Numbered from the stretch's first letter, positions 827-27,000 are shown. The stretch is DNA of 64,000 nucleotides from Macrostomum hystrix (GCA_950097015.1 CATNEN010000031.1:3162001-3226000); one strand, 5' to 3'. Numbers and translations: made by a program. The notes: generated by a model not told the origin, from the sequence alone.

Positions 827-986
827 ATGAAAACTGCAGCCGCAGCGGTGGCCGCAGCCGCAGCCGCAGCCGCCACCTCGGCGGCAGTAGGCGGGGATTC
901 AGCAACAACTGGCGGCGGCAACAGCGACGGAGACCACAACCGGCACAGAAAGTACTCGGTGGTTGATCCTCAGACTGATCTCATCA
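827..986 (+). CDS. Candidate alternative first coding exon of the stomatin gene (MKTAAAAVAAAAAAAATS...RHRKYSVVDPQTDLI)
   Basis: ATG at 827, open for 53 codons plus 1 nt, then donor A|GTGAGT at 987. Phase 1 matches the acceptor at 24053. Splicing is inferred. Confidence 0.4.
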
Positions 987-1588
987 GTGAGTACAGCTCG
1001 ATTCCGCTGTGAGGCCACAACCCCCAACTTCCAATTGAGAGTGTGGTCAGGAGTCAGCGGAATGGGCAGAGTCGCCTACTCTCTATGGTCTTTTGAAATG
1101 GTTAAAATGGTCTTTTAGCAATGTCAATCAATTAACAGAGGTTTGAGGCTTCAAGAGCAGCGGAAAACGATAGATTTTTTTAATCCTTAATCCCTATGAG
1201 TCGCTGTGTGCCTGAGCAGTGTGCCGAGGCGGGGGCCCGCGTTTGCTGAGTCCAACTTCTCCATCCTCTGTTCTCTCACTCCCCGCTCCGGACTGCTTTG
1301 CATAATAGATGCCTCCCAGAACCCCATATATAGTGGCCAATTCGTGTTCGCTCAGTTCGTTTGGTGTAGACTGAGGCAGTTGTTTTGGGGTAGAGAGGGG
1401 GTAGAAAATTCGGGATCTACCCCTTCTGCCCCCGTACCTCTAATCTCTGGGGAATGTCTAGTGTCGGGCTGGTGTGGATTAAAAGCCGTGCATTATTCAG
1501 CGGTTCTAAAGCTCTGGGTGTGTCGGGGGCTCGAATCTGTAGCAGCCCAAGCAAAATATTGACGACCGAAATATATATATATAATAAT

Positions 1589-2566
1589 ATGGATTGCTAA
1601 TCTATCTAGTTAGATTTACATGAAGGAATAGAATGGATTGCTAATCTATCTAGTTAGATTTACATGAAGGAATAGAATGGATTGCTAATCTATCTAGTTA
1701 GATTCACATGAAGGAATAGAATGGATTGCTATTCTATCTAGTTAGATTCACATGAAGGAATAGAATGGATTGCTAATCTATCTAGTTAGATTTACATGAA
1801 GGAATAGAATGGATTGCTAGAATGGATTGCTAATCTATCTAGTTAGATTTACATGAAGGAATAGAATGGATTGCTAATCTATCTAGTTAGATTTACATGA
1901 AGGAATAGAATGGATAGCTAATCTATCTAGTTAGATTTACATGAAGGAATAGAATGGATTGCTAATCTATCTAGTTAGATTTACATGAAGGAATAGAATG
2001 GATTGCTAATCTATCTAGTTAGATTTACATGAAGGAATAGAATGGATTGCTAATCTATCTAGTTAGATTTACATGAAGGAATAGAATGGATTGCTATTCT
2101 ATCTAGTTAGATTTACATGAAGGAATAGAATGGATTGCTATTCTATCTAGTTAGATTTACATGAAGGAATAGAATGGATTGCTATTCTATCTAGTTAGAT
2201 TCACATGAAGGAATAGAATGGATTGCTAATCTATCTAGTTAGATTTAGATGAAGGAATAGAATGGATTGCTAGAATGGATTGCTAATCTATCTAGTTAGA
2301 TTTACATGAAGGAATAGAATGGATTGCTAATCTATCTAGTTAGACTTACATGAAGGAATAGAATGGATTGCTAATCTATCTAGTTAGATTTAGATGAAGG
2401 AATAGAATGGATTGCTAGAATGGATTGCTAATCTATCTAGTTAGATTTACATGAAGGAATAGAATGGATTGCTAATCTATCTAGTTAGACTTACATGAAG
2501 GAATAGAATGGATTGCTAATCTATCTAGTTAGACTTACATGAAGGAATAGAATGGATTGCTAATCT
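1589..2566. repeat. 44-bp minisatellite (ATGGATTGCTAATCTATCTAGTTAGATTTACATGAAGGAATAGA), about 22 copies
   Basis: Direct inspection. Confidence 0.97.
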
Positions 2567-3124
2567 AGTCTGTTTCATAAACAATGTGTTTTGCTAAAAG
2601 TGCATTCCCAATGAATCTAAAAGTTCCACCCAAATTGCAAAGTGACAACTGGCGTGCACAACTGTCGGCTATGGGGAATTATTGACAACGGATTATTCCC
2701 TAATTTTTTCCCGTCAGCAGTAGCGGTGATGGTAGAGGCTATAAGCCTCCGGTCCTTATTGTCACGTCGAGTTCTCAACGGGCACTCGGACCTGTCACAA
2801 AGCACCTGCTTTTCATCAATTGAGTCACTCTCAGGCCCTGCTCACTGGAGTGGCCAATGCCTAATGCCTGCCTGCGTGAGACCATGGAAGGACAGGATAT
2901 GCTTGTGTGGTTGTGAGGGAGTTTTTAAACTAGCCGAACAATAGTAGGAGTGCGTGCTGCTGCTGCTGTTGCTGTTTCTTCAGTAGGTTGTAGAAAAATC
3001 TATCAAAAACTTTGCCTTTTCAATCTTATCAGTTATTCTTAACTTCTTCTAAAGAGTGATTTAGCATGTGATTTAAAGGTAGCAAGACAACATTGAGGAG
3101 TTGAAAAAAGGAATTGAAAATTGA

Positions 3125-3900
3125 AAAGGGGATCAAAGTCAAGGAACTGAAGATCAAAGTCAAGGAAAAGGGGATCAAAGTCAAGGAAGGGGATCTAAGT
3201 CAAGGAACTGAAGATCAAAGACAAGGAACTGAGGATAAAAGTCAAGGAACTGAGGACCAAAGTCAAGGAACTGAGGACCAAAGTCAAGGAACTGAGGATC
3301 AAAGTCAAGGAACTGAGGATCAAAGTCAAGGAAAAGGGGATCAAAGTCAAGGAGCTGAGGATCAAAGTCAAAGAACTGAGGATCAAAGTCAAAGAACTGA
3401 GGACCAAAGTCAAGGAGCTGAGGATCAAAGTCAAAGAACTGAGGATCAAAGTCAAGGAACTGAGGATCAAAGTCAAGGAAAAGGGGATCAAAGTCAAGGA
3501 GCTGAGGATCAAAGTCAAAGAACTGAGGATCAAAGTCAAGGAACTGAGGATCAAAGTCAAGGAAAAGGGGATCAAAGTCAAGGAGCTGAGGATCAAAGTC
3601 AAAGAACTGAGGATCAAAGTCAAAGAACTGAGGACCAAAGTCAAGGAGCTGAGGATCAAAGTCAAAGAACTGAGGATCAAAGTCAAGGAACTGAGGATCA
3701 AAGTCAAGGAAAAGGGGATCAAAGTCAAGGAGCTGAGGATCAAAGTCAAAGAACTGAGGATCAAAGTCAAAGAACTGAGGATCAAGATAAGGGACAAGGG
3801 ACAAGGGATCGTGGATTAGGGACAAGTAAATCAAAGATTAGAGATAATGGATCAAGGATTAGAGATAAGGGATCAAGGATTAGGGACAGGGGATCTGGGA
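3125..3900. repeat. 21-bp minisatellite (GAGGATCAAAGTCAAGGAACT) with a higher-order variant pattern and degenerate right edge
   Basis: Direct inspection. Confidence 0.95.
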
Positions 3901-4227
3901 TCAATCATATGGAACAAAGTTTTAAGTGCTTCAGCTATCACTCTCCACGCCATGTATTTTAACAATGAATACTGCGCGACCATTGAACAATTTTCCTTCG
4001 AAACGAAATGTTGGATATTTCCTTCGTTAAGACGGCCCGATTCCCTTTATTTTCTCTCTCCCTAACTGGAAGCAGCAGAAAGTGTATCACTTCTTCTCTG
4101 AGGCGAAGCGAAGGCGTCTGATATGCCACCAGTTAGGCCGCGCAAGTTTTTGGCACAAGTCTGCAAGGATAGAAAGGAAAGCTTTTCTACCTCGCAAGCA
4201 ACAGCAGCAGCAGCAGCAGCCTCTCAG

Positions 4228-4267
4228 ATGCCCAGAAAATCCTCCAGACCAGTGGATACGGGCGCCA
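4228..4267 (+). CDS. Weak candidate alternative first exon of the stomatin gene (MPRKSSRPVDTGA)
   Basis: ATG at 4228, 13 codons plus 1 nt, donor A|GTAAAT. Short and could be chance. Confidence 0.2.
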
Positions 4268-5448
4268 GTAAATCAGATTGTGGGGGTTGATAAACGAAAA
4301 AAAACAGTTTAAGCAGAGAAGGATGGGGAGCGAGTCTAGCAGCATGACGAGCGGGTTTTGCTTGAACAGATTTCGGTATAAGCTAGGCGGCGTTGTGTTT
4401 ATACAATTTTCTTCAGATTTGATCTCGCCTATGCATCAGCCAGCATATAATGCTAGTCAGGTGGTCACTATGCAATATTTTTCTCATTCTCATATCTCTT
4501 CTACTCTATAATGGCTTCTGTTTATTGTCCGCCAGCCACGCGGAGCACAGCTCAAACCGTTGCGACTTCTCCTTCCATTTCCTAACCTCTCCGAAGCCTT
4601 GCTCGATCTGGGGATGGGGTGGGGCCACGACACACGCGCCGTTCTCGCATAATTTTGATCGATTCCCGACTCTCCGCGTCCTTTTCCCCGTCTCTCTCTC
4701 TCTCTCTCTCTCTCTCTAAAGAATTGATTTTTCCTTCTAAGGAGAAGCAGAGTATTGCGGGGTAACAATTAGTCCATCTCTGCTTCCTCTAGTCATTGGC
4801 CAAGGCGGCTTGCTAACGGCTTTGATAAGTTCGCCGACACAGCCATAGCCGAGCTATATTGATTTGCACTTGATCAGATCATCGGCGACAGCAGCAGCAG
4901 CAGGTGCCGAAAGCTGCACATTAAGTGACATGAAGAGCTTGAGAAGTGCTCGCAGCACTGTGTCAAGCTGTGAGGCGCTATGAGCAGGGCTTACTCATTT
5001 CGAGAACTGGCTCTAAAGTGGAATACTGACAAATCGGATGCCGATTCGGCTTCTCCATGTTAATCCGAGGAAATGGACTCGAAAACTCTAGATGCAATGT
5101 AGGGAAAAGTTGAAATGAAGAGGAGAATGAATATTAATGATATTTAAGAGAGATGAGAGAGATCAGAGATGAGAGAGACGAGATGGGGTATTGCTTATCA
5201 CAAGAAAAATAAGTGAATAGTAATATAATTAAGAGTCGGGCGTATGGGCTACTAGGGTGGGATGGGAATTGGAAATTTAAGTCTGAAAGAACGCAGAAAA
5301 ATGATTTAACAGTGCTGAGATAACAGAACTGCTGCGAGTTGAGAAATTTGTGAGTTGGAATATTTCTAGAGGCCCGGGATCTGGATTATCAGATGCCGAT
5401 AAGTTCCCAGCCAAATACTTATTCATTTATTATATCTCTTAGGGATAA

Positions 5449-5602
5449 ATGCTAGCGGATTATTCTAGGGATAAAGCCGAACGCTGGCAGTTGGCAGTCG
5501 GCGATTGTTTTGAAACGATGGCGAGCACTAACGGGTGGATGCCGCTACCAGGAATACTTTTCCGCGAAAAGTGTCCAGTTACACTGAAGCCGGACTACCA
5601 GA
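5449..5602 (+). CDS. Candidate alternative first exon of the stomatin gene (...MASTNGWMPLPGILFREKCPVTLKPDYQ)
   Basis: ATG at 5449 (a second in-frame ATG follows), 51 codons plus 1 nt, strong donor A|GTAAGG at 5603, phase 1. Confidence 0.33.
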
Positions 5603-5954
5603 GTAAGGGAGATACGAGTCAGCCGAAATATCCTCTCTGCCGCCTCTTGGGAAAAGCAAACTTGGCTCAACCCAATGCCAAGCGCAAAACAGAGGCTTTG
5701 GCGGTAAGCTAGAGTTGGTATTTGAGCAATAATTACGGCCGATCTAAGTGTAAGTTGGACGAAGTCGGGCGAAATACAAATTGTTGCATTTATAATTTTT
5801 TTTTAATCCCAGACTTGAAACTGCTCAAATAGGAAATATTTTCGATAGAAATCAATAGGTTCTGAAATCCCAAGATGGGAATTCCTTGGATTGGGAATTC
5901 CTTAGATTTTAAAGTCCTTTATATTTAAAAAGGACCTCGATAGATGTCCGGCTT

Positions 5955-6255
5955 GGTAAATCCCAAGGTCTGTAAATCCGAAGGTCGGTAAATCCCAAGG
6001 TCGGTAAATCTCAAGGTCGGTAAATCCCAAGGTCGGTAAATCTCAAGGTCGGTAAATCTCAAGGTCGGAAAATCCCAAGGTCGGTGAATCCCAAGGTCGG
6101 TAAATCCCAAGGTCGGTATATCTCAAGGTCGGTAAATCTCAAGGTCGGTAAATCCCAAGGTCGGTAAATCCCAAGGTCGGTAAATCCCAACGTCGGTAAA
6201 TCCCAAGGTCGGTAAATCCCAAGGTCGGTAAATCTCAAGGTTGGTAAATCCCAAT
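5955..6255. repeat. 16-bp minisatellite (AAATCCCAAGGTCGGT)
   Basis: Direct inspection. Confidence 0.95.
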
Positions 6256-7164
6256 CTCGTGAAATCTAAATTTCGGGATTTTTTAGCATCAAGCTTGAGA
6301 AATTCCTAAATTGGGAAATGCTTAGGATAGGGCAGTCCTAAGGTAGGAATTCCCGTGATTTTCAAATTCCTGGATCCACATTTTTCGCCCATTAATCGTT
6401 GAATATCTCGACGATGCTGATGTTTTGTGATTCTGCAATTGTTATTTCATAATCTAAAGTACAAAAGCGAGGTGGAGCTGGTAGTTGGACATTTTGCGAT
6501 ATCCGGTCGCAATGGGTTCTAGCCAAAGGAAGGCGGGGAGATCCATTCGCGGAAAATCCCAGCAGAATTTCACATTCCTTATATCCAGTGTTCTATTTTC
6601 TCTGCTTTTACTGGCAAGCAATCGCGGCGGAGTCCCGTGGGTCCGGGTCCCCCCTACCCCAGCCTCTCTATCTTTATCCCTTTTCTCTTGCTTAACTGCG
6701 TCTCTCGAGCTTGGCGCAGGGGGAATAAAATAAGATTTTTCTAGAGGAATGAGCAGTCAGTCACGAGAAATTGGCTTAGAGAGATGAGAGAGACTTAAGC
6801 ACAGGCAGGCGGGGTGGAATTTGGATGCAGAAGGGACATGGAAATAGGGAGGCCGAGACCCCCCGCTGGGCCCAAGCTTGACAGGTCCCGGACCGGCAGC
6901 ACAAACCCTCAGTCTGCGGCAATCCGTGCGGGGGGAGGGTAACAACTGCCGCTTCTGTAATTGAGCTTCGACCGGCGAGTGCATTAGCGGAGTAGCCGAG
7001 AGTGATCAGGTCCTCATAAACATCGAGCACTCCCTAGAGTACCGAGGAGTCTTTGTTATAGCCGAGGAGTTTTATTATCGGCGAATAAGAGCTACAAGTA
7101 ATGTTAACCTACTAAATCATGTGGGATGTTTAGAAAATCGATGATTCCCCAGGGTAGGAAGTCC

Positions 7165-7320
7165 CAAGGGTTCCCTACTTGGGGAAATCCCTACTTGGAG
7201 AATCCCTACTTGGGGAATCCCTACTTGGGGAAATCCCTACTTGGAAAATCCCTACTTGGAGAATACCTACTTGGGGAATCCCTACTTGGGGAAATACCTA
7301 ATTGGGGAAATCCCTACTAG
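7165..7320. repeat. 15-bp minisatellite (AATCCCTACTTGGGG)
   Basis: Direct inspection. Confidence 0.93.
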
Positions 7321-8172
7321 GGTAAATTCCCTTTTTGGTAAATTTACTTCTTGAGGAAAATTTATTCAGAAAATCACTTTTCGGAGATTTCTATTGGTCG
7401 AAAAATCTATAAAATAAGGAATCCTGAGAAGAGTAAATTTTAGGAAAATTCCGAGCTGGGGAAATTCCCATCCAGGTCTGAAGTCTCCTATGCAGGAAAT
7501 ATTTTTCCTATAAAGCTCATTCGAAACTGGGTGAGGATAATCCAAAGTTTAGGAAATTCCTAGTGTGGGAAGTCGTGTGGTTGGGAAAAAAGCCATTGTG
7601 AAAAATGCCTACTTTTTGTTCTTTTTATTCTTCAGTAAGAATCAGTTCATTCATCAATTTTGAACTAATTTCTACGAAGATTCCCATCCAATATTCAGCA
7701 GCAAAATTAGATCTTACAATTATGTCCTTTTCAAATACACGAGTACTTCATAGATAGATAGTCAATATAAAAATTGCATCAATCAGTTTAATGATCAGTG
7801 CATCGGAGTAAGGAGATGGAAGTCACTGGCTAAATCTCAGCCTTTTTCATTAATAAGTTTTATCTATTTTATATTGTAAAGTTTACCGAGCTTATTTATA
7901 GATTATATAGGAGAGACAGCTAATCCAATACAGCAGGTCCTGAGTTCGAATCTGTAGCGAGTTCCTTCTAGATTCCCGATAAACTTCTAGTACGAGTAGC
8001 TTTGCTAGCACTTGGAAATTTCCAAATGACCGAAAAATGCACTTATTGCATAGTTTTATACCTAAATTGGGGAACGAAGAGAGGAGGTGGGTGGCTAGGG
8101 AAGTTCATAACGGACACTCTATAAGTCTCCGTTTGTGATCCCATCGCGGTTGCCCCTGGAACAGCACCCACC

Positions 8173-8275
8173 ATGGATCTGCTAAACACAATAAGCAAGG
8201 CTGATGCTGCTGCTGCTGCTGCTGCTGCTTGGCCCTCTTACCCCTGTCCGTCATTTAGTTTTGAGCGCCGGGCAG
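8173..8275 (+). CDS. Weak candidate alternative first exon with GC donor (MDLLNTISKADAAAAAAAAWPSYPCPSFSFERRA)
   Basis: ATG at 8173, 34 codons plus 1 nt, then AG|GCAAGT, the consensus GC-AG donor, in phase 1. Confidence 0.2.
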
Positions 8276-11110
8276 GCAAGTGTCAGCTGCTTCTGGGCCA
8301 TCTTTCGCATTGTCTAATTTCTGTCTATGTGTCTATCGTCTCTCATGAACTGCAAGACACTTAGGCTGGAATCAAACTTGACCAAAACCAACAGTCGCAA
8401 ATGTGGAGTTCTAGAGGACAGTAACATGAAAGATTTTCAAGTGGAGAGAAGATTGTACAGTGGCTACGGTGTTTAAAGAAGCAAGCCCAAATAATCCTTT
8501 GAAAGATGTCTCGAAATATACGACTAACCAATATTTAAGAACAAACTTCAGTAGTATCACATGGTCAGTGATTTCTAAATATAAGAAAATATGTTTGAAA
8601 AGTTTTCTCGCGACATTACTACTAGCTATGTTGAAGAGCAAATCTTAAGTAGTATAGACATGTTGATTGTCTGCTAAAAAATAGAAGCATGCGTTCGTGA
8701 CATACTACTAGCTGCGCTGAGAGCAAATCTGAGTAGTAACACCAGGTTGATTGTCAGCAAAATTATATATATTGACTTTTGTTCGTGACATACTACTAGC
8801 TATGCTGAAAGCAAATCTTAATAGTATCGTCTGGTTAATGACATATAAGTTTAGGAAATAGAAAATTAGCCATGTAAAGAGGTCTCAGAGCGAGTGAAGA
8901 CGACTAGGATAGAGAGGGAAGCAGAGAGGAAAAGCAGGAAGAATTCACAGTTCACCGGGTCCGGTTTCCTTGAGTTCAGGTCCATTGGGGGGCGAAAACT
9001 AGACAACCTGACCAAACCCATAAGAGCGGGGGTTCGTGTGAGCAGCTATGCGTGAGCAGTTACAGCAAAAGTTGGGAAGCAAAAGAGGAAGCTGCATATT
9101 TCCTCTATGTAGCACTGACCAGACCAAAGACTGAAGTGGAAGCGAGAGAATATAAGGCTTGAAGTGAGTGCAGAGGAGATTTCCCCTTCTTAAAAAAGAG
9201 AGAAGAAGAGGGACAGGCAGAGGAGAGAAGAGAAAGAGAAGTTTTTGGCCGCAGCGTGAGCATGAAGTGGATCTTTTCTTATTTCTGTTGCACAATTTTC
9301 CGCTTAACGGAGGGACTTGTAACTCTCTTTTCTCTCCCACTGCCTAGCGGCCCTTCTGTTTGTGAGTGTCCCTCTTAGCGGCTTGCACCCGGTCTATTCC
9401 TCTGGGGGTTGTGGGGGCCTGCCTTCAGCAGTGCGTCTCGTTGATGTAGTCCTTGCTTCGCTCATTCGTTTAGTCCTGCTGGACCTTCCAGCTTCCGTCC
9501 TCATCTGCATGTGGTTGTTCTTTTTCTATCCCTTCCCATATGAGCTAATACTAGCGTATATCCCCAGAACTTATCCCATTTCGCCGTTCGCTTTGAAGCT
9601 CTGCATGGAGCTTTATCTTGGGGCGGCGGATAAAGCCTGCGACACCCAGCATTGGACATTGGGCGCCAAGGGACGCAATCTCTGCTAATCCTTCTTCCTT
9701 TCCTCTCTCTCTTTCACTCGCTTCATTCCGCCTCTTTGAAGAAAAAAAATTGTGGCTACCCCCCAAGTCCCAGTCTCGCCCTCGCCGTCTAGCGCAGGAC
9801 TGGGGCCGGGGCGGGTTGCAATTAAAGATGGCTTGGTTCTGAGCTGTCGCCAGCTGCACCCCCCTCCTGAGCACGCAAGATACATCTGAATGTGAATCGA
9901 TAAATTACTGGCAGGGCTCCTCGCATCTTTGAGCTAGAAAACACCTGAATATTATTTTACAGAACGCAAAAAGGCATCTGGGAATTTTTTCTGTGATTTC
10001 TGATCAACAATCCTCTTATTCAGATTTTCTCCGTGGTATTCTTGACCTAGCAGCGCCTATGGCTCTTCATATCCCCCTATAGATAGTCCCAACCTCCATG
10101 TGCTCCTGATAGGGAAGAAAGTGATTTTATCCTCTCGTTTCCCCTATACCGTCGTCGACCCATCTTCGGGCGAGGATAGCAGCAAGCGATAACGGGGGGA
10201 GAATTCGAAAGCCCCTCAGGGCTTAATATCCTGCCGAGCTGGTCGGCTTAATAATCCCGGCCTGGGGTTGGGGATTAACACAGCAGCCCAGAGACATAGG
10301 ATAAAAGAGATCTAACCTGAGTCTTAGCCTACCTAGCCTCTCCAAGGCCGAGTACACGCCACAGGAACTCTTCTTCTCTATGGGCCAGTTGGCATTGGCA
10401 ACTGCGGCCAACAATGAGCTGCTTTCACTCCGGCCTCGCCGAGGCATGCAATCATTTCCCTTGCACGCCAAGACCGTGTCTCCAAGCTGCGGGGATGTGT
10501 CTCCCTCTGCCCCTTCCTCCCCCAAGGCACTGACAGAACACGGGGGGCGGCCAGCGGGTGTGTGACAGACAGGGGGTCTCGGCTGGATGATGATTTTGGA
10601 AGCGGCGGAGATAGTGGACAGGCTGATGATGGAAGGGATGAAGATGAGCTGCTGGGACATGCTCTGGGCTGGGAGACGATGAGCCTGGGAGAGCGGGGGC
10701 GGAGGTAGCATACAATTATTTCTCCTCTTTGCACTGGGTGCCCCAAAACCCTCCTTGGCCCCGCTGCCAGTCCCGGAGTGCCAGCACCAGCCGCTCCCTT
10801 CACTAAATCAGTCGCTGGCTCAGCTCTGCCGGGTGAGATGGATAGTACTCAGTCCACCGCCACCTCAATGCAGCCACCCCCAACCCCCGACTCTCTTCCT
10901 TTCAGCGCCAACACTCTTGCTTCTCGTCCCCAATTCCCGGTTCCCACAAAAAAAAGATTTCCCCCAGAGTCCAGGTGGAGGGGAGGGCTAGGCAGGCGAG
11001 TTGCCAGCGAATGAGGCCAAGAAGGGAAAGAAAATAGTCGGGTTGGGGGGGTTGGCAGGCGAAAGCTATAGATAGGGGCTGCCGTGTTAGCCAGCACAGG
11101 GCAGGCCGTG

Positions 11111-11249
11111 ATGAGCGGTGGCAGCAACATCAACAAGGTGACACCAGAGGTAGCCATTGAGCACTACTCAGGCGAGGGACCATCGGCAGGCATGGCCGAA
11201 AGCTTGGGCGCGGCATCTGCGACCCCAATGAAGCCAGGATACCATGTCG
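11111..11249 (+). CDS. Candidate alternative first exon of the stomatin gene (MSGGSNINKVTPEVAIEHYSGEGPSAGMAESLGAASATPMKPGYHV)
   Basis: ATG at 11111, 46 codons plus 1 nt, strong donor G|GTAAGA at 11250, phase 1. The sequence has a coding-like composition and a minisatellite starts about 43 nt after the donor. Confidence 0.5.
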
Positions 11250-11292
11250 GTAAGACAAGCTTTCCGTCGGAGCACTTCAATACAACATATTG

Positions 11293-12080
11293 CAGATCCC
11301 CGATATTCCAGATCCCCAATATTCCAGATACCCAGTATTCCAGATCCCCATTATTCCAGATCCCCGATATTCCAGATCCCCAATATTCCAGATCCCCATT
11401 ATTCCAGATCCCCATTATTCCAGATCCCCATTATTCCAGATCCCGATTATTCCAGATCCCCGATATTCCAGATCCCCAATATTCCAGATCCCCGATACTC
11501 CAGATCCCCAATATTCCAGATCCCCATTATTCCAGATCCCCATTATTCCAGATCCCCGATATTCCAGATCCCCGATATTCCAGATCCCCAATATTCCAGA
11601 TCCCCAATATTCCAGATCCCCAATATTCCAGATCCCCAATATTCCAGATCCCGATTATTCCAGATCCCCAATATTCCAGATCCCCATTATTCCAGATCCC
11701 CGATATCCAGATCCCCAATATTCTAGATCCCCATTATTCCAGATCCCGATTATTCCAGATCCCCGATATTCCAGATCCCCAATATTCCAGATCCCCAATA
11801 TTCCAGATCCCCAATATTCCAGATCCCCAATATTCCAGATCCCCAATATTCCAGATCCCCAGTATTCCAGATCCCCATTATTCCAGATCCAGATTATTCC
11901 AGATCCCCAATATTCCAGATCCCCAATATTCCAGATCCCCAATATTCCAAGTCCCCAATCTGCCAGATCCCCAATATTCTAAACCTGCAATATTCCAAGT
12001 CCTCAATGTTCCAAGTCCCCATTATTCCAGATCCCCAATATTCTAAACCTGCAATATTCCAAGTCCCCAATCTTCCAATA
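11293..12080 (+). repeat. 16-bp minisatellite (CCAGATCCCCAATATT), left arm of an inverted pair
   Basis: Direct inspection; reverse complement of the array at 12972-14070. Confidence 0.97.
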
Positions 12081-12361
12081 TGAAAATATTCCAATATTTA
12101 AATATCCCACTTTACTAATCTACCCGACTCCGCATGGGCCAGGCTGTGAAGCACCAGCTCCCCCACTCCCCAATGGCCTGGTGTTTGCATCATAAACTGA
12201 CGGCCCACCAGTCGTGGCATGCATTAATTTAGCTTCTCACTGCATCGGTACCAGGAGTATGAAAAATATGTAAAATAAATTTTAATTACCAATTCAGGAG
12301 AAAAACATTATAGCCCCGATACGCCGCCGCGCTTGAGCAAAGCGCAATAGGAACTCACCGC

Positions 12362-12375
12362 ATTGCCATGGCAAC
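12362..12375. promoter_or_regulatory. Candidate RFX X-box (ATTGCCATGGCAAC)
   Basis: 13/14 match to the palindromic X-box consensus GTTGCCATGGCAAC. Function not shown. Confidence 0.4.
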
Positions 12376-12433
12376 CAATGGTGGGCGTTTGCGAAGATGC
12401 GGGGCCCGCTGGATGGGAACATTGTGTTCAGTC

Positions 12434-12971: not shown

Positions 12972-14070
12972 GATTTTAGGGATCTGGATTATTGGGGATC
13001 TGGATTATTGGGGATCTGGAATATTGCAGGTTTAGAATATTGGGGATCTGGCAGATTGGGGACTTGGAATATTGGGGATCTGGAATATTGGGGATCTGGA
13101 ATATTGGGGATCTGGAATATTGGGGATCTGGAATATTGGGGATCTGGAATATTGGGGATCTGGAATATCGGGGATCTGGAATATCGGGGATCTGGAATAA
13201 TGGGGATCTGGAATAATGGGGATCTGGAATATTGGGGATCTGGAGTATCGGGGATCTGGAATATTGGGGATCTGGAATATCGGGGATCTGGAATATTGGG
13301 GATCTGGAATATTGGGGATCTGGAATATTGGGGATCTGGATTATTGGGGATCTGGATTATTGGGGATCTGGATTATTGGGGATCTGGATTATTGGGGATC
13401 TGGAATATTGCAGGTTTAGAATATTGGGGATCTGGCAGATTGGGGACTTGGAATATTGGGGATCTGGAATATTGGGGATCTGGAATATTGGGGATCTAGA
13501 ATATTGGGATCTGGAATATTGGGGACTTAAAATATTGGGGATCTGGAATATTGGGGATCTGGAATATTGGGGATCTGGAATATTAGGGATCTGGAATATT
13601 GGGGATCTGGAATATTGGGGATCTGGAAATTTGGGGACTTAAAATATTGGGGATCTGGAATATTGGGATCTGGAATATTGGGGATCTGGAATATCGGGGA
13701 TCTGGAATATTGGGGATCTGGAATATTAGGGATCTGGAATATTGGGGATCTGGAATATTGGGGATCTGGAAATTTGGGGACTTAAAATATTGGGGATCTG
13801 GAATATTGGGGATCTGGAATATTGGGGATCTGGAATATTGCAGGTTTAGAATATTGGGGATCTGGAATATTGGGGATCTGGAATATTGGGGATCTGGAAT
13901 ATTGGGGATCTGGAATATTGGGGATCTGGAATATTGGGGATCTGGAATATTGGGGATCTGGAATATTGGGGATCTGGAATATTGGGGATCTGGAATTCCG
14001 GGGATCTGGAATATTGGGGATATGGGGATCTGAGATCTGGGGATCTGAGATCTGGGGATCTGGGGATCTG
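12972..14070 (-). repeat. 16-bp minisatellite (GGGGATCTGGAATATT), right arm of the inverted pair
   Basis: Direct inspection. Confidence 0.97.
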
Positions 14071-14531
14071 AGCAGTTAGAAATCGACCTCACTACTCAAA
14101 GTAACCGTGTCGAGTGTGTAGAGATTGTCTTATTTATAATTCGACTAGCTTTTTTTGCCCGTTGTTTTTGGGGCAGAAATTTAAAGCAAAGCAGTAAGCA
14201 ATTCACGTCTCTGTATTAACTTTATAGTGAAGGTCACCATTTATTTATTTACTGCATTAATGAAAAGTGACGAGTTTGTTTAAGGGCGTTTTAAGTAAAA
14301 AATAAGTGAAAAGTTTGTCCAAACAGCCCCCTCTTAATTACTTCTTTAGAAACATGTCTCTTAGCCTCTATACAGTCAGTGGCAGATCCAGGAATTTTGT
14401 TTTGGGGCGGTCTGTCAGGGGAGCGCCATGAGAATCACAGAGGGGGTGCCAGCGGCCGAAAAAGGGCGCCAGGAGCCAAGAAAGGGCGCCAGCGGCTGAA
14501 AAACGGGAGCCAGCGGCTGAAAAAGGGGCGC

Positions 14532-16621: not shown

Positions 16622-17611
16622 CTGAAAATTAGAAGTAGTCCGATTGACAGGGGACCTGTGTTAAAAAATCTTTCTCTTCTCTTCAGTGGGAGAGGCTAAG
16701 CCTCTGTATATTTTAGCAAAGCACTACGCCAGCCTCTCTCTTTCTTCTATCCCAGGCTGGCTGGAGAGAAATATCGACCGGAGAGCCCTGCGCACTGGGA
16801 CGCCACCGCACTCACCGCACTCAGTCTCAGTGCTGCTTGGGGGCCAGTAGACAGTCTAGGACTCTAGGGGTTTGGGCTGTGTACATTCACCGCTTGAAAT
16901 ACAATGTACAGTCTGGGGCTTCGGCGCCCGGGGAAGGGAGGGGGTGGCTGTAATAAAATTTGGCCCGCAGAGTGGCGGAGGGGAGTTGGGGTGGCTGTCC
17001 TCGGAAAACAAAAAGTGACTCACTTTGAGATGATGCAGCTTTGCTCTGGATTGAGTAGAGATGTTCAAAATTGACAGCATTGTTGGAAAACATGTAAAGT
17101 GTAAGTGGATCAAATTTGGAGAAAATCTGACAAAGTGGGGCGACGATATGTCGAATTGAGTGATTTTTTGACGATTTTTGAGCAGTTTTTTGCACTTTTG
17201 AGCAGGAAGGAAATGATTTTTCGGGAATTTGAGTAGCCTATTGCACTCAGCGTAGGTGGTTTTAGGTATGTGCAAAGTTTGGTGCGATTTGGTTGAGCGG
17301 TTTCGGCGTCTATAAAGACAAAAGGTTGCACACACACAGACAGACAGACAGAGTTTTCACTTTTATATAGATTACTAGCTTTTTTTGCCCGTTGTTTTTG
17401 GGGCAGAAATTTAAAGCAAAGCAGTAAGCAATTCACGTCTCTGTATTAACTTTATAGTGAAGGTCACCATTTATTTATTTACTGCATTAATGAAAAGTGA
17501 AGAGTTTGTTTAAGGGCGTTTTAAGTAAAAAATAAGTGAAAAGTTTGTCCAAACAGCCCCCTCTTGATTACTTCTTTAGAAACATGTCTCTTAGCCACTC
17601 CTCTATACAGT

Positions 17612-17885
17612 CAGTGGCAGATCCAGGAATTTTGTTTTGGGGCGGTCTGTCAGGGGAGCGCCATGAGAATCACAGAGGGGGTGCCAGCGGCCGAAAAAGG
17701 GCGCCAGGAGCCAAGAAAGGGCGCCAGCGGCTGAAAAACGGGAGCCAGCGGCTGAAAAAGGGGCGCCAGCGGCCGAAAAGGGGCACCAGTGCTGCGACTG
17801 GCACCCCTGGTGGGGGCATCTTATTCCCATGATTAAAATTTAGGGGGGCGACTGCCCCCCCCCACCCCCCCTAAATCTGCCTCTG
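17612..17885. mobile_element. hAT-type MITE nested in the Helitron 3' region
   Basis: Imperfect TIRs CAGTGGCAGATCCAG and CTAAATCTGCCTCTG, with a perfect 8-bp TSD TATACAGT at 17604-17611 and 17886-17893. A truncated twin lies at 14377-14532. Confidence 0.85.
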
Positions 17886-18037
17886 TATACAGTATGCATG
17901 TACACGCGTATACATAAGGAAAATAGCCATGGCATAACAATAACAATGTCAAAGAAACAAAATTAAACTATTTCAGAGTTCAGAGTTAGACAGGTCAAGG
18001 TCAATTCGTGACTACTTTTCTATTAATTGCTTGCGAG

Positions 18038-19010
18038 TCACCTCAAAGCCTGGGGATACACCACATTCTTCGTTCTTCCCCTTGGTGCGAAAATGAATAG
18101 GCCAGCTGGAGTTCCAACACGGGAGCAGGCGACATAAAGCTGCCCATGCGAGAAGCAAGGAGTCTCCAGGTTGATGCCAGCCACCTTCAGCGACTGTCCC
18201 TGAGCCTTGTTAATAGTCATCGCAAAGCACACTCTCACAGGGAACTGCAGTCGCTTGAACTGAAATGGCAGGTCCGTGGGGATAATTGGAATCCGGGGAA
18301 CGAACACAGACTCTCCTCTGCCAGATCCAGTCATTATCGTGGCCTCAATCACGTGTGGGAAGAGCCGCCTGACTATCAGTCTGGTGCCGTTACACAGCCT
18401 TGGCGCATTCAGGTTGCGGAGGAGCATAATTGGTGCCCCAACTTTCAGCTGCAAGTTGTGCGATGGAGTTCCAGGAGGATCTAGAGAGTTCAGAAACTCA
18501 ACAGGATACTCCACAGCGGTGTCATCAGTCAACGTTGTATCAATTGACTTGTAGGTGAAAACTGCACCTGGCAACTCCTGAAGCAGTTGGTAGTTAATTT
18601 CGTTGGCGGCATGCCGGCATCATTTCTAGGACACAGAATTGCCCTCTCTGACAGCCAGTCAACGTCAGCATATCGAACCATCAGGTTCGGGTAAACTTTT
18701 GCCTTGAGCTCCTGCACTGACTGCACAATGTTTCCGATTGTAGCGATCGATGACTGCCCATCCTCGGTGCTAATCTCCAGCAGACCATTGCCGATTCGCA
18801 ATAGATTGGCAGAGAACTCATGAGCTGTTTCGTCTCCTTGAATTGTAGCTCTCATGTTTGTTCGTAGGTGCAACTTCACAACCGATGGCCACAGGTGAGA
18901 TGATTTTAGGCAAGCATTAATCTCATCAGCAGGAGTGCCACGCGGAATCACAGGCAGCGTCTGTCTAAAGTCTCCAGACAGCAGCAGAGTGACACCACCC
19001 ATCAGTTGAT
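18038..19010 (-). pseudogene. Helitron PIF1-like helicase C-terminal fragment, frameshifted
   Basis: Motifs LLLSGDFRQTLPVIPRG, LRTNMR, ILCPRN, KVGAPIMLLRNL-LCNGTRL, QFPVRVCFAMTINKAQGQSL and FSHGQLYVACSRV. Frame change at about 18608-18615; stop at 18038. Confidence 0.9.
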
Positions 19011-20338
19011 CGCCAGCCTCTCTCTTTCTTCTATCCCAGGCTGGCTGGAGAGAAATATAGACCGGAGAGCCCTGCGCACTGGGACGCCACCGCACTCACC
19101 GCACTCAGTCTCAGTGCTGCTTGGGGGCCAGTAGACAGTCTAGGGGTTTGGGCTGTGTACATTCACGGCTTGAAATACAATGTACAGTCTAGGGCTTCGG
19201 CGCCCGGGAAAGGGAGGGGGTGGCTGTAATAAAATTTGGCCCGCAGAGTGGCGGAGGGGAGTTGGGGTGGCTGTCCTCGGAAAACAAAAAGTGACTCACT
19301 TTGAGATGATGCAGCTTTGCTCTGGATTGAGTAGAGATGTTCAAAATTGACAGCATTGTTGGAAAACATGTAAAGTGTAAGTGGATCAAATTTGGAGAAA
19401 ATCTGACAAAGTGGGGCGACGATATGTCGAATTGAGTGATTTTTTGACGATTTTTGAGCAGTTTTTTGCACTTTTGAGCAGGAAGGAAATGATTTTTCGG
19501 GAATTTGAGTAGCCTATTGCACTCAGCGTAGGTGGTTTTAGGTATGTGCAAAGTTTGGTGCGATTTGGTTGAGCGGTTTCGGCGTCTATAAAGACAAAAG
19601 GTTGCACACACACAGACAGACACACACACACACAGACAGAGTTTTCACTTTTATATATATAGATTCGAATAATTAGTATGTACATGAGCGTCAATATTTC
19701 TCAGTAAAATTTCCTTCAGTATTCCATTTCCACCCGGAGTCAGTAACCCGACCTATCCAACATGCCCCAGGACAAAGTTTCGTCAAGTCGAAGGCGATTC
19801 TGTTCAATGCGGTGGTTTAATCCTCCGAGACTGTGCTATGCTAGCCTCCCCAGGCCGCGCAGATCAGGGAAAGTACTGCTAGTATGGCCCGCCTCCTGTC
19901 TATCACTGGTGTATTCGATGGATTAAAGAGATTGGTATTTCTGCGCGCTTCGGATTAAATTAGGACCCCGGGATTAGGGATTATTGGCGGGCCAGCAAAA
20001 AGCCGCCCCAGTCGCCTAAGCCCACCGCCCACCCCATCACGCTGAAGTGGCTGCTGGATTGGGGAATTTAATTCTGGCCTCTTCTAGTCTACTCCCTGCT
20101 GTTTGCGAGCCGGGGTGCTGATAGCTGAGGGAGGAGTCATAAAATAGGACAGACAGGCGAGGCAGCTGCGTGATTGGCTACATGAAATTCTGCTGCTTCT
20201 AGTATTGAAGAGACCTTCATCTGAAGTGAAGCCGCATTGCTTAGTACTCAATTAGGCCGGCTGTTACTTGCGAATGCGGCAGAACAAAATTTCTGCTGTT
20301 CTGCTATCTCATCGAGGCGCAAAATAGTCAAACAGGCA

Positions 20339-20483
20339 ATGAGGGCCAATCGTGACGAGATTAGAGGACTAGGTCATCAGCATCCAGTTGTTCATCATCA
20401 ACCTGCAGGGCCGCAAGTCATGGGGCCAATAAGAGTTGGTAGTTTGATGAGGGACGGCTTCTTTACCGAGTCACCGTGCATCG
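20339..20483 (+). CDS. Candidate alternative first exon of the stomatin gene (MRANRDEIRGLGHQHPVVHHQPAGPQVMGPIRVGSLMRDGFFTESPCI)
   Basis: ATG at 20339, 48 codons plus 1 nt, donor G|GTGAGA at 20484, phase 1. A minisatellite starts about 47 nt after the donor. Confidence 0.45.
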
Positions 20484-20530
20484 GTGAGAACAGTTCTAGC
20501 TGGCAGTTGCCAGGGGGTTTTCGGATTGTA

Positions 20531-21385
20531 GAGACTCAGGTTTGAGTAGCTGATGGAGACTCAGGTTGGAGTAGTTGATACAGACTCAGGTTTGAGTAGT
20601 TGATACAGACTCAGGTTTGAGTAGCTGATACAGACTCAGGTTTGAGTAGCTGATACAGACTCAGGTTTGAGTAGTTGATACAGACTCAGGTTTGAGTAGC
20701 TGATACAGACTCAGGTTTGAGTAGTTGATACAGACTCAGGTTTGAGTAGTTGATACAGACTCAGGTTTGAGTAGCTGATACAGACTCAGGTTTGAGTAGC
20801 TGATACAGACTCAGGTTTGAGTAGTTGATACAGACTCAGGTTTGAGTAGTTGATACAGACTCAGGTTTGAGTAGCTGATACAGACTCAGGTTTGAGTAGC
20901 TGATACAGACTCAGGTTTGAGTAGTTGATACAGACTCAGGTTTGAGTAGCTGATACAGACTCAGGTTTGAGTAGTTGATACAGACTCAGGTTTGAGTAGT
21001 TGATACAGACTCAGGTTTGAGTAGCTGATACAGACTCAGGTTTGAGTAGTTGATACAGACTCAGGTTTGAGTAGTTGATACAGACTCAGGTTTGAGTAGC
21101 TGATACTGACTCAGGTTTGAGTAGTTGATACAGACTCAGGTTTGAGTAGTTGATACAGACTCAGGTTTGAGTAGCTGATACAGACTCAGGTTTGAGTAGC
21201 TGATACAGACTCAGGTTTGAGTAGCTGATAGAGACTTAGGTTTGAGTAGCTGATAGAGACTCAGGTTTGAGTAGCTGATGGAGACTCAGGTTTGAGTAGT
21301 TGATACAGACTCAGGTTTGAGTAGCTGATAGAGACTCAGGTTTGAGTAGCTGATAGAGACTTAGGCTTGAGTAGCTGATGCAGAT
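20531..21385. repeat. 25-bp minisatellite (GATACAGACTCAGGTTTGAGTAGCT)
   Basis: Direct inspection. Confidence 0.97.
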
Positions 21386-22979
21386 TCAGCTTAGAGTTCA
21401 TAGTATAAAATCCATATTTTTTCAATTGCCTTAATTTTAACATGAGGCTGGGGCGTGAGGCTGTCAAATTGAGTGACAGAATCTTAACCTATCACACAGT
21501 CCCACCATGAGTAACCGGGTAGCACCGCTGGAGCACAATAAATTTTGCAGGCCTTGTTTCACAATCTCCATGCTCTGATAGAGTCCTTGGAATTTTTTTT
21601 TCGTTGGGCTCCCATACTTCAGGGCCATGAGTTAGTTTGGATTCCCAATAGCCCTAATATTTCCCCTTAGTAAAATGCAACTCAAGTTTCTTAGGGAGCA
21701 ACTCACGCGTGTAATCTCTAATGGATGCCGTCATTGTGTATCTAAATGTTGTTTCTCAGAAACCATTTGATTGAATAATTCGATTTATTTCTGCTTAAAC
21801 TCTTACGATTAAGACATATTTTCCGCTTTTTTCAACAAGGTCAAGTGCACGGTTTATTTAAAAATAATTTGAGTTGCTAGGGATTAAGGTATAGGGAACT
21901 TATAGCTATAGATTTGAAATCCTGAGAGAGAGGTCGAGAGTTCGAATTTTAATTAAAAAGTAAAGCGCTCGTGTCCTCGAGAGAAACACCTGATTCACGG
22001 TCAACCAGCTGTAAAATCGCATTCCTGTTGAAATAAAAATTATTTTCATATACGAGAAGTACATGCAGCAGTAGTTCTACTCATAGTATGCAGCAGTAGT
22101 TCTACTCATAGTAGAGTTATTTGCGCCTGAACAAAAAAGTGGAACTATTTTTATCGCGCTTGTTAAATAAGAATAAAATTTATAATTAACAGTAACGTGA
22201 GTGTATTTTCAAGACATCATAGGAAAAATATTTTATTAATAGATTTTTCACAAGTATTTTTCTGGTCTAAAACAGAGTCCTTGGTAGTTTAGTAAAGTGA
22301 AAAATAATTGGGTTTTTTAACTTCAGGGCTGTATAATGCAGGCAATCCTTGGACCCGACTTTTTCGAGGATCAATTCAACGAAAATTGCGCAGCTCCTCA
22401 TTGGCCTTAAGAAGTGAGGCCTTTATGGCCAAGTCCTTCAGCTTGGAAACTCCCCTGAGAGCAGCCGGGGGGTTGGCGTCTGGGGATCAGGGGAAGCACG
22501 CCGAGTGACTGCTTTCCAGTCACTTCGCACTTTCATCATCGGCTCCAGTTGAGAGCTCGGCAGAGGAGAATTGAGTGAAAGAAACTAGCTAAGGGATTTT
22601 TGTTATACCAGGGCAGGCAAAATCAATGTGGCCACGAGCCGAAACTGGGTTCATTGTTGACGTCCCCTTCTACTTCCTCTCCTCTCCTCTCCTCTCTTTC
22701 TATGAAACTCTTTCATTTTTCCTTTCTTAAATCTATCTGCTTCTAGGCGCAGTTCTTCAAAGCCAATTTCCCAAAAGCCCTACTCAGCCAATCAGAGTGC
22801 GAGAAGAGGCGATGCAGTCGGACAGTTGCCCATTTTATCCTTCCTCCAGCCGGGATCCACAATAATCCCGAGTGTCTCGGCCTCAGTTCTGTTCTATGTC
22901 GGACGCAAGTTTTCATTTCCTATTTTCAAACCGGGCCAAGGCTGACTAGTCCTTGAGTAGGACTCAAAAGTCTATTGGC

Positions 22980-23031
22980 ATGTTTGCCGACCGAGATAAA
23001 CGGCCGACCAGCGGGCCGCTCAGCGAGCCGG
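22980..23031 (+). CDS. Candidate proximal first exon of the stomatin gene (MFADRDKRPTSGPLSEP)
   Basis: ATG at 22980, 17 codons plus 1 nt, strong donor G|GTAAGC at 23032, phase 1. A CCAAT motif (gccaatcag, about 22787) and a CT-rich tract lie upstream. Confidence 0.45.
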
Positions 23032-23196
23032 GTAAGCCGCCGCAGATGGATGACCTTCCAGGCCGGACTCCGATAAGGAGGGGCGGGGGGAGAGCCGGAG
23101 TAGGATAAATGGCTTCCGTGTCTGCTGTCTGACGGGCAGAAGTCTGTGCTAGCACAGTGCAGAGACAGAGCATAGGCAGACCCTCTCCAGTGACGA

Positions 23197-23323
23197 ATGC
23201 TGCTGTCACCGCCGCACGTCAGTCAGCTGCTGTTCCTATCGTCGGCTCCTCGACTTGTTAATAAGCGAATTGGCGGCGTTGGCACAGTTGAAAGTCATTC
23301 CAGCGACAAGGACAAAGAAGCCG
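23197..23323 (+). CDS. Candidate alternative first exon, or a 36-nt cassette exon 23288-23323, of the stomatin gene (...VESHSSDKDKEA)
   Basis: ATG at 23197, 42 codons plus 1 nt, donor G|GTGAAT at 23324, phase 1. An internal CAG at 23285-23287 would give a phase 1-1 cassette. Confidence 0.3.
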
Positions 23324-23437
23324 GTGAATTAGTCGGTCCCGACGGTGCTGGCAGCGGATTCGGCGCCGACGCCGGCTGCTGTGCCAGATGCTGCACAGCG
23401 GTGCTCATCAGCTGCGGGCCCGTCGGTAAAAGAAGGC

Positions 23438-23942
23438 CCGCTGAAAGCCCGCTGAAAGCCCACTGAAAGCCCACTGAAAGCCCACTGAAAGCCCACTGAA
23501 AGCCCGCTGAAAGCCCGCTGAAAGCCCGCTGAAAGCCCGCTGAAAGCCCGCTGAAAGCCCGCTGAAAGCCCGCTGAAAGCCCGCTGAAAGCCCGCTGAAA
23601 GCCCGCTGAAAGCCCGCTGAAAGCCCGCTGAAAGCCCGCTGAAAGCCCGCTGAAAGCCCGCTGAAGAGCCACTGAAGGCCGCTGAAAGCCCGCTGAAAAG
23701 CCACTGAAGGCCGCTGAAAGCCGCTGAAAGCCCGCTGAAGAGCCACTGAAGGCCGCTGAAAGCCCGCTGAAAAGCCACTGAAGGCCGCTGAAAGCCGCTG
23801 AAAGCCCGCTGAAGAGCCACTGAAGGCCGCTGAAAGCCCGCTGAAGAGCCACTGAAGGCCGCTGAAAGCCCGCTGAAGAGCCACTGAAGGCCGCTGAAAG
23901 CCCGCTGAAGAGCCACTGAAGGCCGCTGAAAGCCCGCTGAAA
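23438..23942. repeat. 11-12-bp minisatellite (GCTGAAAGCCC) grading into a 32-bp higher-order unit
   Basis: Direct inspection. Confidence 0.95.
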
Positions 23943-24052
23943 CTCAACGAAAATTACGCATTAGAAAATTTGTTCACAAAAAAATATTTCCCGATGTTTC
24001 TGTTGCACTCTGAGCCATTTTTCTCCAACCTCTCGCTTCCATTTTAATTTAG

Positions 24053-27000
24053 GTGCTCAGCGCGACGGTAAGGGCATCGGGATATGCGGAACTGTGCTGC
24101 TGTTTCTGTCCTACGGACTCATCTTCCTCACATTGCCCTTCTCTCTCTGCCTCAGCATCAAGGTGAGTTGGCTCATACTATGCGTTAAACTGTTGAAAGA
24201 CCAGGGTTATAATATAATCATTATTGATTATATTTTTGAAACAATATGGATTCGCCAAAGAGGTTTACACAGAGTAATGTTAGTTGTCCTTGTCAACAGG
24301 ATCTTCGACAAGAATCCCTGAATGTCTCGACGATGCTGACTCGGACGGCTTTGAAAGTCAGAAAGGCGGAAAAATGTTGATCCAGATGGTGGACTTTCAC
24401 AAAAATCGGTCATTTAGTTTGGGAGCTGTCGTGAAGTGGGCATTGGGTATTTGAAATGCCCCGTGGTCCTTCCCCAGGGGAAGATAGCCTGGTCTTTCTA
24501 CTGTAAACAGTTTGTAAAAAGAGTCGAGAGTCCACGGCTCGAATTTCATCCACCAGGTTGTGGCCGAGTACGAGCGAGCCGTCATCTTCCGCTTGGGTCG
24601 CATTCTGGAAGGCGGCGCCAAGGGTCCCGGCCTGTTCTTCGTGGTGCCCTGCATGGACATGATCCGCAAGGTCGACCTCAGAACTGTCACATTCGACGTG
24701 CCGCCCCAGGAGGTGCGTCACGGGTGGAGGGGGGAGGTTTGTTAGATGACTGCAGATGGTGTGATGTCTGTGAATTCCTGTAGATTGCATCCTGTCTGTG
24801 AATGCCTGTAGATTGCATCCTGTCTGTGAATGCCTGTAGATTGCATCCTGTCTGTAAATGCCTGTAGATTACATCCTGTCTGTAAATGCCTGTAGATTGC
24901 ATCCTGTCTGTGAATGCCTGTAGATTGCATCCTGTCTGTAAATGCCTGTAGATTGCATCCTGTCTGTGAATGCCTGTAGATTGCATCCTGTCTGTAAATG
25001 CCTGTAGATTGCATCCTGTCTGTAAATGCCTGTAGATTGCATCCTGTCTGTGAATGCCTGTAGATTGCATCCTGTCTGTAAATGCCTGTAGATTGCATCC
25101 TGTCTGTGAATGCCTGTAGATTGCATCCTGTCTGTGAATGCCTGTAGATTGCATCCTGTCTGTGAATGCCTGTAGATTGCATCCTGTCTGTGAATGCCTG
25201 TAGATTGCATCCTGTCTGTGAATGCCTGTAGATTGCATCCTGTCTGTAAATGCCTGTAGATTGCATCCTGTCTGTAAATGCCTGTAGATTGCATCCTGTC
25301 TGTGAATGCCTGTAGATTGCATCCTGTCTGTAAATGCCTGTAGATTGCATCCTGTCTGTGAATGCCTGTAGATTGCATCCTGTCTGTAAATGCCTGTAGA
25401 TTGCATCCTGTCTGTGAATGCCTTTAGATTGCATCCTGTCTGTGAATGCCTGTAGATTGCATCCTGTCTGTGAATGCCTGTAGATTGCATCCTGTCTGTA
25501 AATGCCTGTAGATTGCATCCTGTCTGTGAATGCCTGTAGATTGCATCCTGTCTGTGAATGCCTGTAGATTGCATCCTGTCTGTAAATGCCTGTAGATTGC
25601 ATCCTGTCTGTAAATGCCTGTAGATTGCGTCCTGTCTGTAAATGCCTGTAGATTGCGTCCTGTCTGTAAATGCCTGTAGATAGCGTCCTGTCTGTAAATG
25701 CCTGTAGATTGTTTCCATGTCTGTAAATGCCTGTAGATTGTTTCCATGTCTGTAAATGCCTGTAGATTGTTTCCGTCTGTAAATGCCTGTAGATTTTATC
25801 CTGCCTGTAGATGCCTGTAGATTGTTTCCATGTCTGTAAATGCCTGTAGATTTTATCCTGCCTGTAGATGCCTGTAGATTGTTTCCATGTCTGTAAATGC
25901 CTGTAGATTTTATCCTGCCTGTAGATGCCTGTAGATTGCGCCCTGTCTGTAAATGTCAGGGGAGCAGTGCAGAGATTAAAAAAAACTGGCGTCAGGTGCT
26001 TGACTTGTTGGCCATGAGAAAGTGCTCACACAGCCTTCATTAGATCTGGCAGCAAGTGTTTCCTGGTCAAGTGTTTGTTAAATTAGGCTTAGTATAGTCC
26101 GCTAAGCCAATCCTTGAGGCAGTCTGGGTGAGTCAAGAATTTCTGTGCCAGTTAAGCTGGCAATGGTGAGGACAGCTTTATCAGGCTGGTGGTCAGAGGA
26201 TTTTCCGCTGCTGCTGCTGTTGCTAATCCGATTTGTCTGATTGGAATGCCGGTTGTTTAACAAGGCTCCGAATCTTTGGTATTAACTTTCCAGTGTTATA
26301 TCTGCTCTTTCAAGGAATTCATAAATATTCAAGGAATAAAATCACCAAAAAATAACTTTAAATTCGTGCGTTAAAGAAGTGCGGCATAACAAAAGTGTAC
26401 AATTCTATTAAAAAATGGTGAGTTGGGATAAACAGATAAGGAACGGAAGTATGGATAGTATATACTTTCTTCTTTCTTTCTCCTCATAACAATATTCTTT
26501 TTAGCGCATTCTCAGTTCATTTGAAAGGCCCGCTGCAGTCTTATTAGAATGAAATTGTGGCCTATATATATTGTCTATTTACGAGTCTATATTCGTTCAT
26601 TAAGAGGCTAGAAGTTCCAGAGGAGGCTGAAATATTTCTATATAAATAAATACCGACTTCCTTTAAATAAAGTCACGTTTAATTTATTGCTTACGATTAT
26701 CTGAGCCCATTGATACGCTTGCCAACTAAATGCTAATTTATGGACAATTTTAGCTGGACTGGAAATAAATTGAGATGGCGAAATTTCGCGGTGTAATTGC
26801 ATCCAGGAATAGAATTTTAGCGGGGAAAGAACTGAGCAGTGATAAAAGAGCAAATGTGGCAGCCCTGATGATCAAGGAGTGGAATGAGGAGAGGTGAGCG
26901 ACATGAGTGAGTGATGAATGAAGGATAAGTGACAGATGAGTGACAGACGAGTGACAGATCTAACTGCCTCTCGACCGCGGGTTTCCATATCCGTGAATTG

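Follow-up and report, generated by a model that had tools for sequence, protein, structure and literature searches.

This study concerns a stomatin gene in a 64,000-nt stretch of the Macrostomum hystrix genome (GCA_950097015.1, CATNEN010000031.1:3162001-3226000), hereafter the window, with positions counted from its first letter. The gene lies on the plus strand, its constant part spans 24053-32655, and it is one of four close MEC-2-like SPFH stomatin paralogs in this flatworm. Comparison among the paralogs and with Macrostomum lignano makes it highly probable that at least three alternative first exons, encoding heads unrelated to one another, feed one constant stomatin body, and that the remaining candidates upstream are chance open reading frames (ORFs). 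On comparative sequence grounds, three exons, designated types A, B and C, are well supported as alternative first exons of the window gene:

827-986, + strand: distal first exon, type A; Ala-rich head with terminal motif RKYSVVDPQTDLI; donor GTGAGT in phase 1; junction codon AGT (Ser)
20339-20483, + strand: middle first exon, type B; core motif VMGP(I/M)RVGS; donor GTGAGA in phase 1; junction codon GGT (Gly)
22980-23031, + strand: proximal first exon, type C; 17 codons with terminal motif TSGPLSEP; donor GTAAGC in phase 1; junction codon GGT (Gly)

The body that receives these heads was delineated by similarity searches run exon by exon, with each exon taken singly:

24053-24162, + strand: constant exon 2; phase-1 acceptor, no ATG; Cys and hydrophobic hairpin
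24557-24712, + strand: constant exon 3, start of the SPFH domain; Pfam Band_7 PF01145, 1e-6
27004-27207, + strand: constant exon 4, SPFH domain; Pfam Band_7 PF01145, 1.4e-11
30502-30557, + strand: constant exon 5; frame and splice sites read, homologue match
30699-30777, + strand: constant exon 6; frame and splice sites read, homologue match
32458-32655, + strand: last coding exon, with stop codon; 98-100% identity in the paralogs

Both SPFH exons score above the PF01145 cut-off, and the homologues carry the same domain. Exon 24053-24162 has AG directly upstream and opens with the last two bases of a codon, so that the earlier observation that it lacks an ATG and begins in phase 1 is borne out by the sequence. 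Its peptide runs ..GIGICG and then through about 25 hydrophobic residues with a central Pro, aligning with the corresponding segment of annotated stomatins; the gene thus encodes a hydrophobic hairpin and neighbouring Cys just N-terminal of the SPFH domain. This exon is 71-74% identical to its equivalent in the paralogs and alignable with M. lignano proteins, and exon 24557-24712 is 96-100% identical in the paralogs. A library search with exon 27004-27207 returned 3860 matches at E <= 0.001, mostly fragments, and led to full-length relatives, the closest of which are M. lignano proteins. The same exon has 18 further matches in the M. hystrix genome, three of them (paralogs C1, C3 and C24) at 97% identity.

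To trace the upstream region we compared seven loci: the window, paralogs C1, C3 and C24 (40-60 kb fetched around each) and M. lignano loci L025, L026 and L027. Nucleotide alignments between the window and its paralogs are confined to exons and repeats, the introns being otherwise unalignable both between paralogs and between species; peptide-level conservation outside the body is therefore informative. Approximately 30% of the upstream region is tandem repeat, and unmasked tblastx was dominated by minisatellites, so the search was rerun on DNA masked with Tandem Repeats Finder (TRF). Across the 24-kb upstream region, tblastn and masked tblastx revealed exactly four colinear, non-repeat conserved blocks, at approximately these positions:

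~935-994, + strand: conserved upstream block
20417-20458, + strand: conserved upstream block
22959-23036, + strand: conserved upstream block
23386-23430, + strand: conserved upstream block

Type A, whose motif is RKYSVVDP, has a homologue with an ATG and a phase-1 GTGAGT or GTAAGT donor ahead of each of the three M. hystrix paralogs, and another in M. lignano L027. The Ala-rich start of the 827 exon is common to the sister paralog C1, which supports 827 as the true ATG, and the window copy carries a poly-Ala expansion. Type B retains its ATG and phase-1 GTRAG donor in all six other loci (C1, C3, C24, L025, L026 and L027). Type C likewise retains its ATG and phase-1 donor in these six, 0.4-3.7 kb 5' of the constant exon, with GPLS(D/E)P as the motif across loci. 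Among the loci with DNA fetched, and with the window included, homologues thus occur at five loci for type A and at seven each for types B and C. Wherever a homologue is found, the ATG, the frame, the phase-1 GTRAG donor and the 5'-to-3' order of A, B and C are maintained; the three window exons and their counterparts in all loci examined each combine an ATG of their own with a donor phase that matches the shared acceptor. The published M. lignano cis-donor motif is GT[G/A]AG. The three to four heads show no similarity to one another, and each is orthologous across loci.

In the gene models of M. lignano (GCA_002269645.1), each of the three head types is joined directly to the constant body. 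Model P0155 (BOX15_Mlig015086g3) carries a type A head ending ..RKYSVVDPQIDLL-S on the body; P0156 (BOX15_Mlig019436g1) combines an identical body with a type B head, ..VMGPMRVGSMRK..DY-G; and P0157 (BOX15_Mlig018945g1), P0158 and P0160 carry type C heads, ..ATGPLSDP-G. Joining the last base of each window exon to GT predicts Ser, Gly and Gly at the junction, and the models have exactly these residues. These models resemble the window in their three head types, in the junction before (Q/A)QRD..G.G.CG, in the junction residues and in the order A-B-C-constant. In L027 (contig NIVC01003832) type A stands at 3001, B at 14297, C at 18993 and the constant exon at 19533, in that order; in L025 and L026 types B and C were seen. 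The models differ from the window in being orthologues of paralogs C24 and C1 rather than of the window copy, in being annotated as separate genes on duplicated contigs rather than as one gene with alternative first exons, and in that none carries the Cys-rich exon described below. Because their locus tags follow the identifiers of the genome-guided transcriptome (PMC8629364), the head-body joins most likely rest on RNA, in that other species.

Long stomatin/MEC-2-like proteins from the trematodes Schistosoma, Trichobilharzia, Clonorchis and Cryptocotyle also carry the type A motif RKYSVVDP, immediately N-terminal to the hairpin, which indicates that this head is old within flatworms. Three further M. 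hystrix stomatin paralogs, L005, L006 and L007 (on C7, C39 and C11), encode a whole protein of 331-372 codons in one open frame and so look intronless. Their long N-termini are unrelated to any head of types A-C or to the Cys-rich exon; considered as possible fossil cDNAs, they were set aside as having no bearing on the heads.

The fourth conserved block points to a further exon between type C and the constant body:

23197-23425, + strand: probable fourth 5' coding exon; Cys-rich, CC-x-RCCTA-x-L-x-x-CG; likely donor GTAAAA at 23426, phase 1

The earlier note had ended an ORF with this ATG and frame at 23323, before a GTGAAT donor at 23324, and the conserved block lies downstream of that donor. 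Paralog C1 and M. lignano L025 each have a homologous, colinear block that follows the type C exon and precedes the constant exon. The two blocks were compared across 40 codons: of 31 base differences, 23 affect third codon positions (P = 4e-6), and the codon changes number 22 synonymous versus 5 non-synonymous, a pattern like that of a body exon. These coding-type substitutions overturn the notion that the match of block 23386-23430 to C1 is due to chance, although a 15-nt exact match would be expected about once in a search of this size. Phase-1 donors are present in the window, C1 and L025, with consensus ones further on in C1 and L025. On balance, the sequence favours 23197-23425 as a real fourth 5' coding exon and candidate for splicing to 24053, with less assurance than for types A to C. 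Three points count against this: its donor in the window is weak (GTAAAA), no gene model carries the exon, and its in-frame ATG was not found in C1 or L025, the genomic ATG being present in the window only. An internal cassette, the other way to read this exon, is rejected on grounds of phase, its in-frame CAG acceptors being phase 0 versus phase 1 for the upstream donors.

The start-codon difference admits a speculative explanation. Both C1 and L025 have an in-frame (C/T)TGCAG just upstream of a conserved Pro-Pro-(Pro)-His, which fits the published trans-splice acceptor motif [T/C]TNCAG, and the Macrostomum spliced leader ends in ATG (AUG). Exact copies of the 35-nt M. lignano leader occur in the M. 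hystrix genome, followed by GTAAG, and the genomic ATG-CTG-CTG of the window aligns where L025 has CAG/CTG-CTG. Speculatively, then, the spliced leader may donate the start codon of the Cys-rich exon in C1 and M. lignano. The exact leader is present in 18 copies, many of them at intervals of about 11.7 kb on C15, C17 and C42, and a long tandem array at C39:12667884-12753120, with a period of about 927 nt, carries a leader variant with three mismatches that still ends GCATG/GTAAG. Approximately 150 nt upstream of the Cys-rich exon, C1 (L014, ~700-900) and L025 (~10230-10290) share, by eye, a conserved CCGACTTGGTGACAG element with a TATA-like box after it, which together may be a promoter of this exon; TATA-like boxes were seen by eye only there.

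The remaining upstream candidates fared differently. All eight ORFs listed in the earlier note do start with ATG, end 1 nt into a codon and carry the donors it gave. Four of them, however, contrast with types A to C in conservation:

5449-5602, + strand: unsupported candidate; donor GTAAGG; no conservation, no Pfam match; unique DNA; ORF continues past the proposed donor to 5703
11111-11249, + strand: unsupported candidate; donor GTAAGA; no conservation, no Pfam match; unique DNA; adjoins an inverted-minisatellite element
4228-4267, + strand: weak, unsupported candidate; donor GTAAAT, off consensus; no conservation
8173-8275, + strand: weak, unsupported candidate; GC donor (GCAAGT); no conservation, no Pfam match

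None of these four has a counterpart in any of the M. hystrix paralogs or M. lignano loci compared, and none has a Pfam match. A copy-number search over 3900-11290 returned only minisatellites and one short interspersed repeat, indicating that the candidates are not transposon ORFs, since the DNA there is otherwise unique. To gauge chance expectation, we counted ATG-started ORFs of at least 13 codons ending at GTRAG and compared the counts with second-order Markov simulations. On the plus strand of 1-24052 there are 2, 10 and 3 such ORFs in phases 0, 1 and 2, against a simulated 3.7-4.0 or so per phase. An excess in phase 1 is thus present (P = 0.018 for at least 10), but it is no longer significant once the three conserved exons are removed (7 left, P = 0.12), and control counts are similar (5, 8 and 0 for phases 0, 1 and 2 on the minus strand; 3-7 per phase in the rest of the window), from which we conclude that the excess largely consists of the real exons. 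The four ORFs and the 23324 donor are therefore most likely chance occurrences in a 23-kb, minisatellite-rich first intron, their number being near what chance predicts (~4 per phase in 24 kb), much as the earlier note had itself cautioned for some of its candidates. Each of the four keeps a small residual probability of being a real exon, because lineage-specific exons are invisible to conservation tests.

The earlier note had also taken minisatellites directly following certain donors as partial independent support. Among 44 donors approximately placed across the seven loci, 7 (16%) have a tandem repeat within 60 nt, versus a background of 5.8% (P = 0.013); four of these seven are in the window, and two of those four are first-exon donors at issue. 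The association therefore holds, but it is weak evidence, with a likelihood ratio of about 2.7.

How much of the proposed battery survives depends on weighing these observations together. If all eight first exons, including 5449, 11111, 4228, 8173 and 23197-23323, were promoter-specific and spliced into 24053, their common ATG starts and phase-1 ends would be explained, as would the excess of phase-1 ORFs over simulated sequence and the minisatellite after 11249, such repeats occurring after real donors about 2.7 times as often as in background. We consider this very improbable: four of the exons have left no trace in the other six loci, whereas the real ones turn up at each locus, and the excess is not significant without the conserved three. 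Of the earlier proposal of up to eight N-termini on one scaffold, the comparative evidence accordingly upholds 827, 20339 and 22980, and probably a fourth with its donor at 23426 rather than 23324. It is scarcely more probable that only the proximal exon 22980-23031 is used in the window paralog, with types A and B inherited as unexpressed relics. The window type B is indeed the most diverged copy and type A carries its poly-Ala expansion, but both keep ATG, open frame, core motif and consensus phase-1 donor within an intron that is otherwise unalignable, and the Ala-rich start that type A shares with C1 argues for constraint. Least probable of all is that the conserved ORFs are part of a different gene, a syntenic neighbour, or that they are cassettes rather than first exons. 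Synteny among paralogs could conserve a neighbour, and the ORF around 827 stays open for 153 codons upstream of its ATG; yet in the M. lignano models A and B pass straight into the stomatin body, bypassing the first exons that lie further downstream, a conserved ATG starts each exon, and Pfam finds nothing else in them.

Several observations weigh against at least three alternative first exons with all other candidates due to chance, the reading that we prefer. For types B and C, no other copy is as diverged as the one in the window, and single-exon E-values are modest (0.003-0.03); the case therefore rests on the joint pattern of conservation. Use of A, B and C in the window paralog itself is deduced from that conservation and from the M. 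lignano gene models. The conservation tests are blind to lineage-specific exons, and once the two real long exons are set aside, phase 1 still holds three ORFs of 45 codons or longer against an expectation of about 0.8, which leaves 5449 and 11111 a small probability of being real.

Under the preferred reading, at least three alternative start regions would transcribe the window paralog. From each would come a separate first exon, with a start codon of its own and coding for a short cytoplasmic peptide that bears no relation to the rest. These exons would all end 1 nt into a codon and join the single acceptor at 24053, so that the isoforms would have the palmitoyl-Cys/hairpin/SPFH body in common and vary in the N-terminal head alone; the Cys-rich exon 23197-23425 would probably be a fourth head joined in the same way. 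This architecture would suggest that each first exon has a promoter of its own, that a transcript uses just one of these exons, and that the heads have a cell-type- or channel-specific role. A broader synthesis takes the battery as ancient in flatworms, on the strength of the type A motif shared with schistosomes and flukes, and allows that the Cys-rich exon may swap its source of start codon. The heads would then act as regulatory modules, type A through a basophilic-kinase-like RKYS site and the fourth exon through a palmitoylatable Cys cluster. Taken as a whole, this synthesis is improbable.

The upstream region also holds helicase-like ORFs, so that the earlier description of it as holding no other recognisable gene needs amending:

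18041-19095, - strand: two adjoining PIF1-like ORFs; PF21530, 1.3e-19; PF05970, 1e-17

These matches to PIF1 helicase domains probably mark a decayed Helitron-type transposon within the stomatin first intron. The same intron holds a 16-nt minisatellite in two arrays, 11287-12077 and 12979-14025, inverted around a spacer of about 0.9 kb, with the first array starting 37 nt past the unsupported 11249 donor. A short repeat of about 55 nt at 6394-6450 has more than 30 genome copies at 90-96% identity. An interspersed repeat at 24220-24414 matches a copy in an intron of paralog C1 at 76% identity over 206 nt, and similar stretches, when translated, recur in the window's later introns and intergenic DNA, at about 33079-33201 and 41700-41940. 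Downstream of the stomatin gene, 45069-45999 on the plus strand contains long, hydrophobic, membrane-protein-like open frames that belong to another gene.

Collectively, these results provide an evidence-graded 5' structure for the MEC-2-like stomatin family in a flatworm model genus, with three conserved N-terminal modules, and probably a fourth, on one scaffold that is repeated in four paralogs and kept in two species. Because stomatin N-termini face the cytoplasm, the heads would be natural candidates for cell-type-specific tuning. The architecture is right in kind as the earlier note proposed it, at about half the proposed size, and it is not new.

The layout follows the logic of clustered protocadherins and UGT1A, in which variable 5' exons with individual starts and donors all feed one shared downstream acceptor and constant region. 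Those arrays consist of numerous tandem duplicates, homologous to one another and encoding large domains, whereas the window gene has three to four mutually unrelated exons encoding peptides of 17-76 residues. A protocadherin-type duplicated array was accordingly rejected, the heads being dissimilar to one another and each orthologous across loci. In Caenorhabditis elegans, mec-2 isoforms are neuron-type specific and functionally distinct, but isoforms A, B and E differ at the C-terminus through MEC-8-controlled alternative 3' splicing rather than through first exons (PMC8934639).

The closest parallel lies in gastropods. We found no paper in the searchable literature on alternative first exons or promoters of stomatins, or on the gastropod layout. 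RefSeq sets from Haliotis rufescens, H. cracherodii, Gigantopelta aegis, Biomphalaria glabrata and Physella acuta, named "band 7 protein AGAP004871-like" or "mechanosensory protein 2-like", nevertheless comprise four to six short, mutually unrelated N-termini attached to a remainder that is byte-identical within each set; the attachment point corresponds to that of the flatworm gene, immediately ahead of the Cys/hairpin exon. These sets are automatic annotations, and their N-termini are not homologous to the flatworm heads, save for a possible GPLSD match in Physella X4. Since they show the same combination of variable head and constant stomatin body, that design is already present in public annotation, and the layout of the flatworm gene appears widespread, but undiscussed, in mollusc annotations.

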